From the sequence record NC_041878.1: DNA of 64,000 nt, one strand, 5' to 3'. A program made the position numbers and the translations under genes. Numbering within the stretch: position 1 is the first letter of the stretch; every line of letters begins with the position of its first letter. Positions 928 to 21,112 of the stretch are shown here, piece after piece. Below the pieces are notes generated by a model. It searched no databases, was not told the origin of the DNA, and saw only the letters and a program-made list of their open reading frames with translations.

Positions 928-989
928 GGGATTTTTTGCAGAAAAATAAATTTGACAAGTGAACCAGGATTATAGTACTATATAAGCAA

Positions 990-1023
990 GCCAGAGAAAT
1001 GGCCTAGCCCACAGGGTGCGGAG
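990..1023 (+). ncRNA. two-hairpin element copy 1
   Basis: GCC-AGAGAAAT-GGC-CTA-GCCC-ACA-GGGT-GCGGAG after TTGACA(952)/TACTAT(976). Confidence 0.7.
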
Positions 1024-1060
1024 ATCCGTCTATTGCTTTTTATTTGAATTTTGGACACAA

Positions 1061-1094
1061 TTCCGCACCCTGTGGGTCAAGGAGTTTCGCCTCC
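1061..1094 (-). ncRNA. two-hairpin element copy 2 (convergent with copy 1)
   Basis: GGAG-GCGAAA-CTCC-TTG-ACCC-ACA-GGGT-GCGGAA after minus-strand TTGCAT-17-CATAAT (1132-1104). Confidence 0.7.
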
Positions 1095-1160
1095 ATGTAA
1101 AGTATTATGCCAGTACTGCGAACATAATGCAAGGACTTTTTACGATTTTCTTTAAAAAAG

Positions 1161-2937: not shown

Positions 2938-3031
2938 ATATTTGATTTTAAAAAGTACTAAGAAAGTACTTGCAATTTATTTTTGAATCTGTAGAATACT
3001 CGTTATTGAAACACGTAACGAGATTTAAGAA

Positions 3032-3316
3032 ATGCAAGTAACACTGAACGGATTTACTTTTACAAAGAATGTTGATGGTACTGATAACATTCAGTCAGTA
3101 CTTAAAAACAAAGATAATAAAGCATTAGGCGGGATTGTCAAAGATGCTAAGAAGATGGCAAACTTACAACGCCTGAAACGTTCGCCTGATGTTCTGGTAT
3201 TCCTGGCTAAAGTACAGGAAGAAACTGAAAAAGTTTACTTTGAACAAAAGAAACCAAAACCTTACAATAAGTACAAAAGGAAATTTAATCCTTGCATTCA
3301 TTCTATAAATGTGTAG
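3032..3316 (+). CDS. hypothetical basic protein
   Basis: ORF behind TTGCAA..TAGAAT promoter. Confidence 0.75.
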   Translation: MQVTLNGFTFTKNVDGTDNIQSVLKNKDNKALGGIVKDAKKMANLQRLKRSPDVLVFLAKVQEETEKVYFEQKKPKPYNKYKRKFNPCIHSINV

Positions 3317-3351
3317 AATGTCTTATATCGAAACGCGACGGAGTAAACAAG

Positions 3352-3741
3352 ATGGAAAGTAAAGCGAAGTTAGAACAATACAGATTAGTACTTGATGTAC
3401 TGATTCAAATGAAAGATTGTATTGACAAAGATGATACTTATACTACAGTACTGAATAAGTCATTCAATCTTTCTCGCTCCCTGGGTATCTGCTGGCATGT
3501 ATATGTTCACACTCCACCAGCGGAGATCACTGGTATCGGATCGGACTATCTTGAACCTGCATTCATTGCGTTAGGGCTTGATCGTGAATATCCGGTTGAA
3601 TGCCAGGTTGATACTGATTCGCCGCGAATCCTGCACTTTACACAACGTAACCTTTACGATCCTGATAACGAGTGCGGAAAGTTGCGGATCAAGTTGGTTA
3701 ATGATTTGATTCAGTACTTTGAACAAAAGTTATCGCAGTAA
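3352..3741 (+). CDS. hypothetical protein
   Basis: ORF; SD GGAG before ATG 3352. Confidence 0.8.
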   Translation: MESKAKLEQYRLVLDVLIQMKDCIDKDDTYTTVLNKSFNLSRSLGICWHVYVHTPPAEITGIGSDYLEPAFIALGLDREYPVECQVDTDSPRILHFTQRNLYDPDNECGKLRIKLVNDLIQYFEQKLSQ

Positions 3742-3799
3742 AAATCTTTACAAAAAAGAGGTTGACTTCGGTTGGCCTCTTATAGTACTATATTAATAA

Positions 3800-3833
3800 G
3801 CCAGAACAAAGGCGTGACCCACAGGGTGCGGAG
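3800..3833 (+). ncRNA. two-hairpin element copy 3
   Basis: GCC-AGAACAAA-GGC-GTG-ACCC-ACA-GGGT-GCGGAG after TTGACT promoter embedded in a terminator hairpin. Confidence 0.7.
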
Positions 3834-3870
3834 ATCCGTTCAGTGAAAAGATAATGAATTTTAGATATAA

Positions 3871-3904
3871 CTCCGCACCCTGTGGGTTAAGGAATTTCGC
3901 TTCC
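3871..3904 (-). ncRNA. two-hairpin element copy 4 (convergent with copy 3)
   Basis: GGAA-GCGAAA-TTCC-TTA-ACCC-ACA-GGGT-GCGGAG after minus TTGACA-17-TATATT. Confidence 0.7.
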
Positions 3905-4164
3905 ATGAATAATAATATACCACTGCTGGAAAGTACTGTCAAGGAAAAAAACAGGGGAACTTTCATGTTCCCCCTAAATGCGACAAAGGCATATATCGGA
4001 CTTTGTGCGAGCTTCGTTGATCGCATGAGTACTATATCACAACGGCCAGGCGAGTGCAACTATTTGATCTGTGATAAAAATATACTTTCAAACGTGAAAA
4101 GTACTTGCAAAGAATGATTAAAGGAGTATACTTAACTTATCGAAACGAACAAGAGGATTTAAAA

Positions 4165-4437
4165 ATGGCTAGTTACAGTGCGTCAATGATTGTTAAGGAT
4201 TTAGCAGGAAAGCCGTGTTTAGCTTGCGGTTCCTTTGGTAACATTGCGATAGATGGTAGATTATCTATTTCCAGGGCGATAGAGATAGCGGAGGAAAGTT
4301 TTAAGAAAGAATCCAAATTTCAAAACAGCGAATACTTGGGATTTGTAATTGAGAAAACTTCTCGATTCGTTGAATATCGTAATCCGAGTATTATCGGTAA
4401 TAAAGAAGTAAAAACTTTTAAAGAACTTGAACGATAA
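4165..4437 (+). CDS. hypothetical protein
   Basis: ORF; SD GAGGA; own promoter. Confidence 0.8.
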   Translation: MASYSASMIVKDLAGKPCLACGSFGNIAIDGRLSISRAIEIAEESFKKESKFQNSEYLGFVIEKTSRFVEYRNPSIIGNKEVKTFKELER

Positions 4438-4500
4438 TACTTGCAAAGTGGGTAATGGTTTAGTACTATTACCCTATCGAAACGAACTGAGGATTTAAAG

Positions 4501-4947
4501 ATGGGAACTCCAGCATGTATCGCAGTAATGAACGACAATAAAGAAGTTACTTGGACTTATGTTAACTATGACGGTTATTTAAACGGCGTAGGTAGAATGT
4601 TGATCGAGCATTACAACGATCTGTCAATAGCTAAAAAATTAATTTCAATGGGTGATATTTCAACATTGAAGCGAACGATGGATTGCCCCGTTGGTCACTC
4701 ATTCGCTACACCTGCACCAAATTGCACAGTATTCTATGAGCGGGATCGTGGTGAAGATAATGTAAAACCACGTCACGGCGATTATGCTATGTTCCTGCGT
4801 TGTAATAAAGGTACAATTAGTTATATCTACACGGATGGACAATGGCACATAGTACGGGAAACAAGTAAACGCGGTGCAATTTTAGACCGTCATAAATTGT
4901 TAGTACTTGGCGAAGTGTTATCCGGTTTATATGATTTTTCGCGTTAA
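4501..4947 (+). CDS. conserved phage hypothetical protein
   Basis: MGT...YVNYDGYLNGVGRMLIEHY resembles the widespread phage YxHWDGYPxxVG family; SD GAGGA. Confidence 0.8.
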   Translation: MGTPACIAVMNDNKEVTWTYVNYDGYLNGVGRMLIEHYNDLSIAKKLISMGDISTLKRTMDCPVGHSFATPAPNCTVFYERDRGEDNVKPRHGDYAMFLRCNKGTISYIYTDGQWHIVRETSKRGAILDRHKLLVLGEVLSGLYDFSR

Positions 4948-5023
4948 TTAAATTGTATATAGTACTTGCAAAATTCTGCGAGTACTATATAATTACTTAT
5001 ATCTTAAACGGGAGAACAAAGAA

Positions 5024-5479
5024 ATGAAAGCTATCGAATTTGAACAGAAAGTAAGAGAATCCTTTTTGAAGTACTTCCCGAACGGGCATATTCGTTTATC
5101 TAAACTTGCTTTAGGTGGCGGCTTACATATTGCTTGCGGCCTGATTGCAAACGTTAAAGAGATCACCGCAACGATCAGACAAAACGACCCGTTAAACGTT
5201 TCTATCTTTATTCATGATAACTATGTATTCAATGATTCAGAAACGGATCTTGATAATGTAGTACTTGAATTTGATAATTCTCATGTATCGGTTATTCCTG
5301 ATAATCCGCACATGTACAGCCAATCGCACAAGATCGCAGCACGTAAAATTAACGCTGCACCAGAAAAAGCACTGGTAAACCTGGATAAGTATTTTAAACG
5401 TGTTAAAGATGTTGTCACAGAGCAAGCGGCATTAAACCGGATTATCAAACAAGATACAATCGATCCTAAGTATCTGTAA
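5024..5479 (+). CDS. hypothetical protein
   Basis: ORF; SD GGGAG; own promoter. Confidence 0.8.
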   Translation: MKAIEFEQKVRESFLKYFPNGHIRLSKLALGGGLHIACGLIANVKEITATIRQNDPLNVSIFIHDNYVFNDSETDLDNVVLEFDNSHVSVIPDNPHMYSQSHKIAARKINAAPEKALVNLDKYFKRVKDVVTEQAALNRIIKQDTIDPKYL

Positions 5480-5559
5480 AATTATTATCAAAAGTACTTG
5501 CAAAATGAATGCGAGTACTTTATAATAAAGTTACATTATTAATCAAGAGGAAGTAACAA

Positions 5560-5685
5560 ATGGTCACTATCGAAAAAGTAAAAGAAATGCTGGAAGAACT
5601 CCGCGATCAGGGTTTTGTTGTTGCTGATACTGATGACGAATTAGAAGCAGCGGCAGAAATAGCATTGACCGTTTTAAATAGCTAA
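5560..5685 (+). CDS. small acidic protein (41 aa, not in ORF track)
   Basis: Promoter + SD GAGG + ATG; MVTIEKVKEMLEELRDQGF... Confidence 0.7.
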   Translation: MVTIEKVKEMLEELRDQGFVVADTDDELEAAAEIALTVLNS

Positions 5686-5757
5686 TTAAAAATAGTACTT
5701 GCATTAATTTGTGAGTACTATATAATTACTTATATCGAAACAGCGGAGTAACTTGCA

Positions 5758-5985
5758 ATGATTGAATTTCGCAGAACTATGGAAATGTCTATCACTATCA
5801 CTGACCCACGTTATACTGAGAAAGAGATCGCGGAAGGGTTATCTGACGGCTCAATGAATATGGGCGAAGAAGATGGCGAAGATGCAGGAAAGATTTTTAA
5901 TAGTGCATGGGATGAAATCGCTACTATTGATGATCTTCATGTATCGGATGTTATGACGCCGGATGTTCAATTTTCAGTGATTTAA
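5758..5985 (+). CDS. acidic hypothetical protein
   Basis: ORF; SD GGAG; own promoter. Confidence 0.75.
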   Translation: MIEFRRTMEMSITITDPRYTEKEIAEGLSDGSMNMGEEDGEDAGKIFNSAWDEIATIDDLHVSDVMTPDVQFSVI

Positions 5986-6058
5986 TTATCAAAAGTACTT
6001 TGACAATTTTGTTAGAGTACTTTATAATTAACTTACATTAAGCGAGAGGATTTTAAAA

Positions 6059-6481
6059 ATGTTACAAGTCAGAGGTTATGCGGAAGGTGGTTTCTGTTTC
6101 ATGTTGGATGATAAAGCGGTATCAGTACATGAAGCATTATTAGCGAATGGGGGTAAGTTTCATAAGAGAACCATTAACGCTCTTAATCGTAATAACCTGG
6201 CGAACGAACAAGATCTGGCAGAGTTTGAAAAGCTGGTAAAGGTTTTACATACTGGCTTAGATGCCTTTAATGCTCGTAAAGTACTGCGTGATCATTTCAA
6301 TATTGATGTATTGAAGATTGAGAACTATTATATTTTAACTAGTTCTGAAATTTATGATCTCATGAAAGTATATGAGATCTGTAAGTACAAAGTAAGTGTA
6401 AAAAGTCCTGCACACTCAACGATGTACTATTTCTTTGAGTACTTAAACCGGAAAGATGTTCGCCGCCTGGAAAGAACATAA
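6059..6481 (+). CDS. hypothetical protein
   Basis: ORF; SD GAGGA; own promoter. Confidence 0.8.
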   Translation: MLQVRGYAEGGFCFMLDDKAVSVHEALLANGGKFHKRTINALNRNNLANEQDLAEFEKLVKVLHTGLDAFNARKVLRDHFNIDVLKIENYYILTSSEIYDLMKVYEICKYKVSVKSPAHSTMYYFFEYLNRKDVRRLERT

Positions 6482-6532
6482 TTCAAGAAAGGGGTTGACT
6501 TCGGTTAGCCCCTTCTGTATACTGTATTCATT

Positions 6533-6566
6533 GGCAGATAAAGCCGCAAGCCCATAGGGTGCGGAG
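6533..6566 (+). ncRNA. two-hairpin element copy 5
   Basis: GGC-AGATAAA-GCC-GCAA-GCCC-ATA-GGGT-GCGGAG after TTGACT..TATACT. Confidence 0.7.
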
Positions 6567-6662
6567 GTATGTCTGTAAGAATATAAATTTGAATAAAGTA
6601 CTTGCAATCTATTTTAAAAGGCGTATACTTATCTATATCGAAACAACACAGAGGAAAACGAA

Positions 6663-8406: not shown

Positions 8407-8467
8407 TTAAAAAAGGGGTTGACATATGTTAGCCCCTTCTGTATACTGTATTCATTGAAATAAATTA

Positions 8468-8484
8468 GCCCACAGGGTGCGGAG
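8468..8484 (+). ncRNA. two-hairpin element copy 6 (first hairpin degenerate)
   Basis: GCCC-ACA-GGGT-GCGGAG after TTGACA..TATACT. Confidence 0.6.
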
Positions 8485-8695
8485 ATGTATCTATTAAAAA
8501 AGTACTGTATACTTAACCAGTACCTATCAAATATAAATTCAAACGAAAAAAGTACTTGCAATGGATGATAAAAGGAGTATAATTGTTTACATGGAAGGGC
8601 AAGAGGTGAAAGGTAATGAGTCGCAGTACTGAAATAGTTCTGTTTATCTTTGTACTAGTAGCACTATCTATTAATTTTAATTGAGAGGATTCAAA

Positions 8696-10164: not shown

Positions 10165-10229
10165 TTACAAAGTACTGGTGAAATATCCAGTACTGTTTTT
10201 ATGTACAGTACTATATCCATTGAATACAT

Positions 10230-10265
10230 CTCCGCACCCTGTGGGCTGTAGCATTGTTCTTGCTA
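10230..10265 (-). ncRNA. two-hairpin element copy 7
   Basis: TAGCA-AGAACAA-TGCTA-CA-GCCC-ACA-GGGT-GCGGAG after minus TTGACA-17-TATTAT. Confidence 0.7.
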
Positions 10266-13434: not shown

Positions 13435-13821
13435 ATGTTTACTACTCATTACTTTGAAACAAGAACCCTGGCTCGTAACAACGTTGCTGTACTGAACGGT
13501 AAATTCAAAGACTTCGGTACTGATGCACCGAAAGGCCAGCGTTGGGCTGTATTGGTTGAAGCACAAGAAGCACAACCAGTGCCGGAAGTCAAAGAAGAAA
13601 TTAAAATCGAACAAGCAACAACTGATAATTCTTCTGTCAGTACTTCCATCAAAGATCTGCATGTTGCCGCCATTGCAAATGCTATGCCAAACGTATCCTT
13701 TACGCCAGGTATGAAACGCCGCGACGATCTGAAAACGCCTAATGGTAAGCCTGTACGCCTCATGGTACGTCGTTCGATGGTGGCTGTACGGTTGGCTCAA
13801 CATATGGCTAACTACGCTTAA
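13435..13821 (+). CDS. hypothetical protein
   Basis: SD AAGGA; host-like codons; own promoter. Confidence 0.8.
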   Translation: MFTTHYFETRTLARNNVAVLNGKFKDFGTDAPKGQRWAVLVEAQEAQPVPEVKEEIKIEQATTDNSSVSTSIKDLHVAAIANAMPNVSFTPGMKRRDDLKTPNGKPVRLMVRRSMVAVRLAQHMANYA

Positions 13822-15160: not shown

Positions 15161-15213
15161 ATTCAAATAAAAGGTTGACTTCGGTCGGCCTTTTTTGTTA
15201 TACTTACTTTATT

Positions 15214-15246
15214 GGCAGATAAGCCGTTAGCCCATTGGGTGCGGAG
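15214..15246 (+). ncRNA. two-hairpin element copy 8
   Basis: GGC-AGATAA-GCC-GTTA-GCCC-ATT-GGGT-GCGGAG after TTGACT..TATACT. Confidence 0.7.
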
Positions 15247-15402
15247 TTATGTCATTTTTAAGTACTTTCTATTTTGAAAATATTATACAAAAACTTATAA
15301 AAAGTCCTTGCAGATAATTCTGATTCTGCTATTATAACCACATCAAGACGGGGCAACGTCTTAGAAAACAAAATTCAAATATTAAGTGAGAGGCAGTACA
15401 AA

Positions 15403-16059: not shown

Positions 16060-16114
16060 TTAATTCTACAAAGTACTTGACTCCGGTTGAGTACTTTAGT
16101 ATTATATATTCATT

Positions 16115-16145
16115 GGCAGATAAGCCGTTACCTACAAGGTGCATA
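16115..16145 (+). ncRNA. two-hairpin element copy 9 (compensatory variant)
   Basis: GGC-AGATAA-GCC-GTT-ACCT-ACA-AGGT-GCATA; one C-G pair swapped to T-A. Confidence 0.65.
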
Positions 16146-16267
16146 ATTGTATCTGTATAAAAGAAAATATAAATTCAAATAAAAAACTTGCATTTATCCG
16201 TCAGTACTGTATAATGATTTACATGGATTAGGGAATGGCCTTAATCATTTTAAGTGAGAATACTATC

Positions 16268-17374: not shown

Positions 17375-17428
17375 TTAAATTTAAAAAGTACTTGACTCCG
17401 GTCAGGTACTTTGCTATTATGTATACAT

Positions 17429-17463
17429 AGCAAGAACAATGCTTTAGCCCATAGGGTGCAGGA
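17429..17463 (+). ncRNA. two-hairpin element copy 10
   Basis: AGCA-AGAACAA-TGCT-TTA-GCCC-ATA-GGGT-GCAGGA after TTGACT..TATTAT. Confidence 0.65.
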
Positions 17464-17583
17464 GTGTAGTTATAGTATAAGGATGTAGTACTGAAAGAAA
17501 TATAAAGTTAAATGAAAAATTCCCTTGCTTTCTTTCTTTCGTGTGGTATACTTTAGTTATTGAAACAGAGCGGAGTTTGAAAA

Positions 17584-18868: not shown

Positions 18869-19207
18869 ATGAGCATGAATTTTTTCATCATGACCAATAC
18901 AACGAAAGACGGTCACACAGAGTACGGCAATACTGAGTATGTAATTGTAGGGCAGGATCGTTTAGGTCGCCGTTACCGTCTGGATTCATCAGCATTGACG
19001 AACGCAGATAAAACTGATCGTGAATGCCGTGATATACAGAACCGTCGCATTATGCGTATGCTTCAAAGTATCGCGTATGGTCAGAAGGTCGATCTTAATA
19101 ACTGGACTGAGATCGAACCAGCATACGAATCTGAGGCTTTCTATAAGTTAGATACTAAGAAGCGTATCACGCTGGAACAAAAACACGTTGAGATGTACGG
19201 TGTTTAA
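18869..19207 (+). CDS. hypothetical protein
   Basis: SD GGAG/GGA; own promoter. Confidence 0.8.
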   Translation: MSMNFFIMTNTTKDGHTEYGNTEYVIVGQDRLGRRYRLDSSALTNADKTDRECRDIQNRRIMRMLQSIAYGQKVDLNNWTEIEPAYESEAFYKLDTKKRITLEQKHVEMYGV

Positions 19208-20709: not shown

Positions 20710-20821
20710 CTCTAACAGGCTATCTTATCATAAAAGTGTTGGCAAAGTCCAGCACTTTTTTTCGTTTTGAAGCAAAAAAATTCCTTGACCTTCCCTGCGA
20801 TATTTGAGAGAATACCTACAA

Positions 20822-20854
20822 GCCAGAACAAAGGCGTAGCCCACCGGGTGCATA
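20822..20854 (+). ncRNA. two-hairpin element copy 11
   Basis: GCC-AGAACAAA-GGC-GTA-GCCC-ACC-GGGT-GCATA after TTGACC..AGAAT. Confidence 0.65.
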
Positions 20855-20892
20855 GGCACGTCCAAAATTCAGTACTCAAATTTTAGATAGAT

Positions 20893-20926
20893 CTCCGCAC
20901 CCTGTGGGTCAGACCGTTACACCGGT
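20893..20926 (-). ncRNA. two-hairpin element copy 12 (convergent with copy 11)
   Basis: ACCG-GTGTAA-CGGT-CTG-ACCC-ACA-GGGT-GCGGAG after minus TTGCAT..TATAAT. Confidence 0.7.
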
Positions 20927-21112
20927 TTATGTACTTATTATACATCAACCACGAATCAATGCAATACCCTAGAGAAAATAAAATTATAAATTCAAACGAA
21001 AAAATACTTGTATTTGTTTGCTGGTGGAGTTAATATCTATTCATCGAAACAAACAACGGCAAGACGAAACAGCCGATAACGTCAAGCCCAACTACGCCTA
21101 GAGGAATTCATC

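Follow-up and report, generated by a model that had tools for sequence, protein, structure and literature searches.

Three sites in the terminal repeat of Pectobacterium phage vB_PcaM_CBB (KU574722), a 378-kb Rak2-like jumbo myovirus, each consist of two copies of one promoter-plus-RNA cassette placed face to face. The stretch of DNA that we analyzed (the window, 64,000 nucleotides) is bases 1-64000 of this genome, with 100% identity over the stretch searched, and all three convergent-promoter sites lie inside the annotated terminal repeat (bases 1-22456; 22.4 kb). In our best reading, the cassette combines a strong sigma-70 (host-type) early promoter with a conserved 50-nt RNA module that begins immediately after it, so that transcripts carry the module at their 5′ end. 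The paper describing the CBB genome reported sigma-70-like promoters and 74 terminators; the 50-nt element is absent from its lists, and we did not find it in the literature that we searched. With somewhat less than even confidence, we interpret the pairs as compact convergent small-RNA genes that limit each other's transcripts through head-on collision of polymerases and a 17-19-bp hairpin, insulating operon boundaries.

Anatomy of the paired and single cassettes

Pair 1 begins with the plus-strand promoter of unit 1 (952-981; TTGACA-18-TACTAT, 10 of 12 matches), followed by the unit 1 RNA module (988-1037, plus strand), which we recognized by its fold and by a score of 61.7 bits with R1, the covariance model of the module with which we searched for the family. 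This module contains a 5′ hairpin (990-1003), a CCC/GGG hairpin and the core (1007-1025), and then a tail. Beyond a 9-bp centre (1038-1046) lies the module of unit 2 (1047-1096; 60.8 bits), which is on the minus strand, antisense to the genes, with its predicted promoter at 1104-1132 (minus strand; TTGCAT-17-CATAAT). Pair 2 is built the same way, with the unit 3 promoter (3762-3791, plus strand; 9 of 12 matches) and module (3798-3847, plus strand; 52.9 bits) facing the unit 4 module (3857-3906, minus strand; 64 bits) and promoter (3914-3942, minus strand; TTGACA-17-TATATT with TG, 11 of 12 matches). In pair 3, a plus-strand promoter (20785-20813; TTGACC-17-GAGAAT) and module (20820-20869; 52.6 bits) face a minus-strand module (20879-20928; 59.8 bits) and promoter (20937-20964; TTGCAT-16-TATAAT). 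The predicted starts face each other at ~988 and ~1097, ~3798 and ~3907, and ~20820 and ~20930.

The remaining units are single. Sense units occur at 6531-6580 (with the promoter of the next gene after it), 8449-8498, 15211-15260, and 17428-17477, and a diverged twelfth unit is at 16112-16160, all on the plus strand. One single unit is antisense (10216-10265, minus strand) and ends at a bidirectional terminator (10171-10194), giving a predicted RNA of ~100 nt. Thus, as an earlier note on this DNA had claimed, a sigma-70-like promoter lies outside each arm of the pairs, on its proper strand, and four units (the minus-strand units of the three pairs and the unit at 10216-10265) are antisense to genes. 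No gene lies downstream of the antisense units.

Several features adjoin the pairs. Two annotated ORFs, CBB_7 (3793-3966, minus strand) and CBB_8 (3965-4117, plus strand), overlie pair 2 together with its promoters and one terminator hairpin, and the start of CBB_7 is upstream of the sole local minus-strand promoter, that of unit 4. These ORFs are probably not genes. A terminator-like hairpin is found on the minus strand just upstream of the unit 4 promoter (3953-3974). Just to the right of pair 1 is a 22-nt inverted repeat (arms 1161-1182/1281-1302, 86% complementary, with 98 nt between them) that has a T run after it on the minus strand.

The core, CCCACAGGGTGCGGA, is present at 1008-1022 (plus strand) and 1062-1076 (minus strand), forming an inverted repeat of 15 bp, all of them matched, around a gap of 39 bp. 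It recurs at 3818 (plus strand) and 3872 (minus strand), where one added base makes a perfect 16-bp inverted repeat (3818-3833/3871-3886) with a 37-bp gap. The pair 3 cores, at 20840 (plus strand) and 20894 (minus strand), form an imperfect inverted repeat, with three mismatches in the plus arm. The window holds 11 matches to the 15-nt core with at most three mismatches, compared to 0.25 expected, a number equaled in none of 100 shuffles. These data confirm the three head-to-head sites with inverted-repeat cores that the earlier note had described. Identity between units 1/2 and units 3/4 is 81-85% over 60-74 nt; thus, pairs 1 and 2 are duplicates of one cassette, as had also been proposed.

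What the earlier note had missed is that the conserved cores do not belong to the promoters. In every aligned copy the elements come in the same order (-35, -10, 7 nt, 1-2 nt, 5′ hairpin, linker, CCC-loop-GGG, UGC, tail), with the spacing from the -10 to the hairpin inspected in 11 CBB units; thus, the core occupies the central part of a 50-nt module with which the transcript begins. In the 5′ hairpin, a stem of 3-5 bp varies between copies yet stays paired (GCCA/TGGC, GGAG/CTCC, AGCA/TGCT, CCG/CGG), and the loop is rich in purines, with AA at its end. After it comes a linker that is UAG, UAA, or UGA in nearly all copies, and then the second hairpin, which consists of CCC, a 3-4-nt loop, and GGG, followed by an invariant UGC and the conserved tail. 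In an alignment of 67 units, 88% of the cells of the 5′ hairpin were paired, compared to 26-60% in slid controls, and 89 cells carried double changes, compared to 32.5 in shuffles, a count reached by none of 500 shuffles. The second hairpin is near-invariant, with one compensatory change (CCT/AGG, in the diverged unit at 16112), and its closing pair is G-U in 28 units. Of 67 units from six genomes, 62 are preceded at the fixed distance by a promoter with 9 or more of 12 matches, compared to 2.8% of random positions. Because the cores belong to a strand-specific RNA module whose hairpin covaries, the inverted repeat reflects nothing more than a pair of RNA genes on opposite strands.

When we scanned the module for a third helix or pseudoknot using mutual information, covariation was detected in the 5′ hairpin alone. 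Pairings between loop and tail that were found by hand were inconsistent across units, and we dropped them. Outside the units, the phage genome contains no targets of the core; the module presumably has a binding partner.

These features also bear on whether the pairs could act as DNA, for example as a bidirectional origin primed by an R-loop across the AT-rich gap, as a cruciform, or through a core that serves as a protein operator. An AT-rich gap does separate two G+C-rich cores, origins in phage T4 combine a promoter with an unwinding element, and an iteron-like array (685-807) lies 150 bp to the left of pair 1. However, pairs 2 and 3 have no iterons, and the core is also present in single units, which lack a partner. 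As the G-over-C skew of the RNA is weak (0.10), R-loop priming is disfavored, and the replication-priming role suggested earlier is further weakened by the presence of 12 units per repeat and of single units with the same module. The variable length of the second-hairpin loop (3-4 nt) and the 28 G-U closing pairs fit RNA rather than duplex DNA, which disfavors a duplex-DNA operator. Extrusion of a cruciform, another earlier suggestion, would be difficult with a spacer of 37-45 bp (up to 67 bp in relatives), which is far too long for easy extrusion; in addition, many arms are imperfect and the centre tolerates insertions of 11-22 bp. We regard a DNA-level element of any of these kinds as most improbable.

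The iteron-like array comprises seven motifs (AGATGG, C or A, T, purines) within 125 bp and is unique in the window. The equivalent place in Klebsiella phage RaK2 holds an array of Fur-box-like palindromes.

Distribution of the family and geometry of the pairs

Ten Rak2-like genome records from four genera contain 8-13 units each, always clustered within ~17-20 kb. There are 12 units in CBB, 13 in GAP32, 12 in Serratia phage BF, 9 in RaK2, 11 and 10 in the uncultured jumbo genomes G003 and G004, 8 in Yersinia fHe-Yen9-04, 12 in Erwinia pEa_SNUABM_12, 10 in E. coli phage 121Q, and 10 in Klebsiella phage K64-1. Among other viral contigs, Rak2-like jumbo contigs alone passed the model, and the module is absent from PA5oct, a distant relative for which RNA-seq exists and which has abundant non-coding RNAs in its terminal repeat. 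No Rfam family was matched at gathering score, with just chance matches to microRNAs (E 0.05-0.7). In 185,000 bacterial genomes (596 Gb), a 19-nt pattern of the module had 2 chance matches and no more; thus, the module is not carried by prophages and does not mimic a host RNA at the level of sequence.

The CBB units are confined to the terminal repeat, so that the 12 units per repeat amount to 24 per genome. Judging from its terminal position, this repeat is probably the first DNA into the cell, where functions in host takeover and anti-defence are expected. Such numbers, together with the near-consensus sequences of the unit promoters, would suit a polymerase sink, in which many strong promoters with abortive or very short products on the first-entering DNA sequester the host's sigma-70 polymerase and collided enzymes are retained at the pairs. 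We consider this very unlikely, since a sink needs neither a covarying RNA hairpin nor a conserved 50-nt transcript, and the phage's own early genes need the same polymerase (PMC5259590).

All 19 close pairs in the ten records are convergent, with none divergent and none tandem. In 13 of the 19, the modules are exactly 9 bp apart while the gap sequence differs between phages, and the distance is therefore 45 bp from GGGTGC to GCACCC and 109 bp from start to start. This exact 45-bp spacing spans four genera. The geometry speaks against the idea that the pairs have no function of their own, with an inverted duplication having arisen once, been copied to three boundaries, and then been inherited while the single units alone matter. 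That idea draws on the 81-85% identity of pairs 1 and 2, on the hairpin type shared by unit 3 and the plus unit of pair 3, and on the finding that promoter cassettes are recombination breakpoints in metagenomic relatives, as described for the PeSL cassettes of T4-type phages (PMC2839356). It does not readily explain why 13 pairs from four genera keep exactly 45 bp despite a diverged gap, whereas the distance from a single unit to the next promoter ranges over 9-61 nt; why no close pair is divergent or tandem; or why the sole changes in length are a specific palindrome inserted at the exact centre. Because the spacing is fixed, neutral inheritance is weakened, and we judge it quite unlikely. 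All pairs may nonetheless descend from one ancestral pair, so that part of their conservation is inheritance.

The breakpoints come from metagenomic contigs of relatives, which skip or reorder blocks. The joints that we identified within 2961-6574 (2961>3307, 2984>6015, 5480>5689, and 6533>4078) are all at promoter cassettes, a pattern that would fit cassette-mediated gene shuffling by analogy with PeSLs.

In the other six of the 19 pairs, 11-22 extra bases are present at the exact centre, and each insert is a Fur-box-like palindrome. Compared to the 19-nt E. coli consensus, five inserts have 3-4 mismatches and one has 5, with its central 13 nt identical; the background of such matches is ~1 in 10,000 positions. 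Fur-box-like centres occur in Klebsiella, E. coli-type, and Serratia/Erwinia phages. Fur-box-like palindromes with 3-4 mismatches, including those at the centres of convergent pairs, are found in RaK2 at 90-230, 391, 617, and 1451, in G003 at 13641, 17809, and 19155-19184, in Serratia phage BF at 1034, and in K64-1. We found none in CBB or GAP32. In the Klebsiella phages, about five or six of these palindromes stand in a row to the left of the early region. RaK2 also has a further, degenerate convergent pair at 540-700 that model R1 missed; its GGGTGCGGGG and CCCACCC arms surround AGTACT and a Fur box, and promoters flank it on both sides.

A second palindrome, AGTACT, is the centre of 5 of the 10 short-gap pairs checked in the first six genomes. 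It lies at the centre of pair 3 in CBB, and right behind the tail in many single units. It is also abundant in the window at large: the terminal repeat (1-22456) has 143 copies, compared to 7.3 expected (19.5-fold), and the next 41 kb (22457-64000) has 166, compared to 13.9 expected. At many early promoters it adjoins the -35 and immediately precedes the -10. AGTACT looks like a putative protein-binding site.

The centre of a pair could be a slot for a dimeric DNA-binding protein (host Fur, or a factor that recognizes AGTACT) that gates a bidirectional small-RNA switch, with the phage reading the iron status or another state of its host in the first minutes. If so, the slot protein would set the balance between short module RNAs on the one hand and read-through and duplex RNA on the other. 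We think such a switch unlikely. The Fur-box-like centres suggest that the earliest phage transcription is unexpectedly tied to the iron status of the host.

Transcript boundaries and proposed mutual limitation

How the units end depends on their orientation. Behind the sense single units, an ordinary gene promoter follows after ~9-61 nt, with no terminator between, while antisense single units have an intrinsic terminator 22-46 nt further on in the four records CBB, Serratia phage BF, RaK2, and G003. At 4205, RaK2 has an isolated antisense unit that has a terminator of its own, in the place where pair 2 would be expected, as judged by position alone. The minus RNAs of the CBB pairs, once past their partner, would meet terminators made of a hairpin plus a T run. 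For pair 2, this is a 10-bp hairpin with a UUCG loop (3757-3780) that contains the -35 of unit 3 and, as six T follow it on the minus strand, probably terminates the unit 4 RNA. For pair 3, it is the terminator hairpin after CBB_50 (20736-20762), which has a T run on the plus strand and, with TTTTAT on the minus strand, likely ends the minus RNA. With terminators beyond the antisense units, antisense transcription appears bounded in every arrangement examined. The public RNA runs that contain related sequence proved to be assembled contigs of other phages, in which starts, ends, and strand are not visible, and our literature search located no transcriptome for this clade.

We also considered an antitermination role like that of N/nut, as the purine loop of the 5′ hairpin resembles boxB. 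The repeat encodes no convincing arginine-rich small protein, and we rejected this candidate; that terminators come after the antisense units also argues against it.

The hairpin at 3757-3780 is one of a set. G/C-rich stem-loops overlap the -35 of units 3, 5, 6, 8, and 9; upstream of unit 1 there is just a weak 5-bp A/T-rich hairpin, and none was seen for the minus-strand units. Those at 3757-3780, 6490-6512, 8414-8436, and 15180-15200 enclose the -35 and read as the terminator of the upstream operon. From their sequence, we take the -35-containing hairpins to be composite terminator-promoter elements.

Across a pair, both strands have the same predicted fold, in which a 17-19-bp hairpin, formed by the core and the complement of its partner, is flanked by a small hairpin on each side. 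The predicted energy of this fold is -46 to -51 kcal/mol (z -6 to -7) for pairs 1 and 2 and weaker for pair 3. On neither strand is there a T run or U tract behind the stem of core and anti-core. Thus, the long hairpin is not a canonical intrinsic terminator.

In the reading that we favor, mutual limitation, polymerases setting out from starts 109 bp apart would collide head-on. A polymerase that passed further would copy the complement of its partner, which would then fold with its own core into the G+C-rich hairpin of 17-19 bp, and one that escaped leftward would meet the bidirectional terminator of the upstream operon. The outcome would be two short RNAs, each with the 5′ module of the family, and an insulated operon boundary. 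In some relatives, a Fur box at the exact centre would probably be an added roadblock. In E. coli, single-molecule work found that head-on collision ends convergent units and prevents read-through, with a nascent stem-loop positioning the collision and trailing polymerases from active promoters completing release (bioRxiv 10.1101/2022.10.23.513370). All three ingredients of collision termination appear to be present in miniature at the pairs, an analogy that fits mutual limitation.

The earlier note had also raised collision and insulation, which is the reading that we favor. With facing promoters, the transcripts must overlap and the polymerases must meet. Several observations count against mutual limitation, among them the lack of a U tract behind the long hairpin. 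As sense single units lack a terminator, stopping a sense transcript is no general need, and the exact 45-bp spacing is not demanded by a collision model.

The main rival is a device based on antisense or double-stranded RNA. Provided that both promoters fire, double-stranded RNA, which the earlier note had proposed, is an unavoidable by-product. The two transcripts of a pair are perfectly complementary over ~109 nt. The transcripts or their anti-cores could base-pair and be cleaved by RNase III, or could act in trans to neutralize the other ten module RNAs and thereby time or damp the family. In keeping with this, the complement of the core, CCGCACCC, is on a transcribed strand within pairs only, with one chance copy elsewhere in the 378-kb genome, and the predicted folds of pair RNAs contain the 17-19-bp stems. 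Those same stems, however, would lock the anti-core inside its own hairpin, and in many pairs the arms are imperfect: pair 3 of CBB has three mismatches, and the arms in Serratia phage BF have different loops. We therefore see an antisense device as a fairly unlikely alternative to mutual limitation.

Relation to known systems

Convergent promoters, transcriptional interference, and collision-based termination are already known. Face-to-face pairs of the same small-RNA gene with starts 109 bp apart, base-exact across four genera and in a virulent phage, are undescribed in the literature that we searched, and they point to an undescribed early RNA family with a dozen or so members in each genome. 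For studies of head-on polymerase collision, the pairs offer a compact natural test system, in phages whose hosts (E. coli, Klebsiella, and Pectobacterium) are easy to handle.

The cassettes resemble the PeSLs of T4-type phages (PMC2839356, PMC4122927), which are likewise small cassettes repeated across the early region of a large myovirus genome, where ORFans abound. PeSLs also combine a sigma-70 early promoter and an AT-rich upstream region with an adjacent GGGG...CCCC terminator stem-loop, for which a subset of our units has candidate counterparts, and breakpoints of insertions and deletions between relatives fall at the cassettes, as the metagenomic contigs suggest may also hold here. As described there, however, PeSLs are without a conserved transcribed module, whereas a structured 50-nt RNA lies behind every promoter here, and convergent pairs with fixed spacing do not appear in the passages on PeSLs that we examined.

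As in the pairs, collision termination in E. coli involves units that converge on a symmetric stem-loop, which forms in both nascent RNAs, and trailing polymerases delivered by strong promoters. It differs in that the E. coli units are full genes with a terminator stem-loop flanked by U and A tracts (bioRxiv 10.1101/2022.10.23.513370), while the CBB pairs have starts only 109 bp apart, build the stem from both modules, and lack a U tract.

The pR/pL promoters of phage 186 and Pe/Pc of P2 (PMC5001618, PMC7498355) are also face-to-face phage promoters, ~60-110 bp apart. In 186, Apl or CI binds between the promoters, the position at which six of our pairs have a Fur-box-like site. Unlike the phage studied here, 186 and P2 are temperate, and their promoters, which are of unequal strength, drive opposing lytic and lysogenic operons (PMC5001618, PMC7498355). 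The CBB-type pairs belong to a virulent phage, both promoters would yield short RNAs of one kind, and several pairs occur in a genome. Opposing gene sets of the 186 type were not found in CBB, as its antisense units drive no downstream gene.

Lastly, SdsR and RyeA (PMC6610125) are, like the RNAs of a pair, two small RNAs that are convergent at one locus and fully complementary. SdsR and RyeA are otherwise unrelated in sequence (PMC6610125), whereas here both partners come from one family and share its 5′ module.
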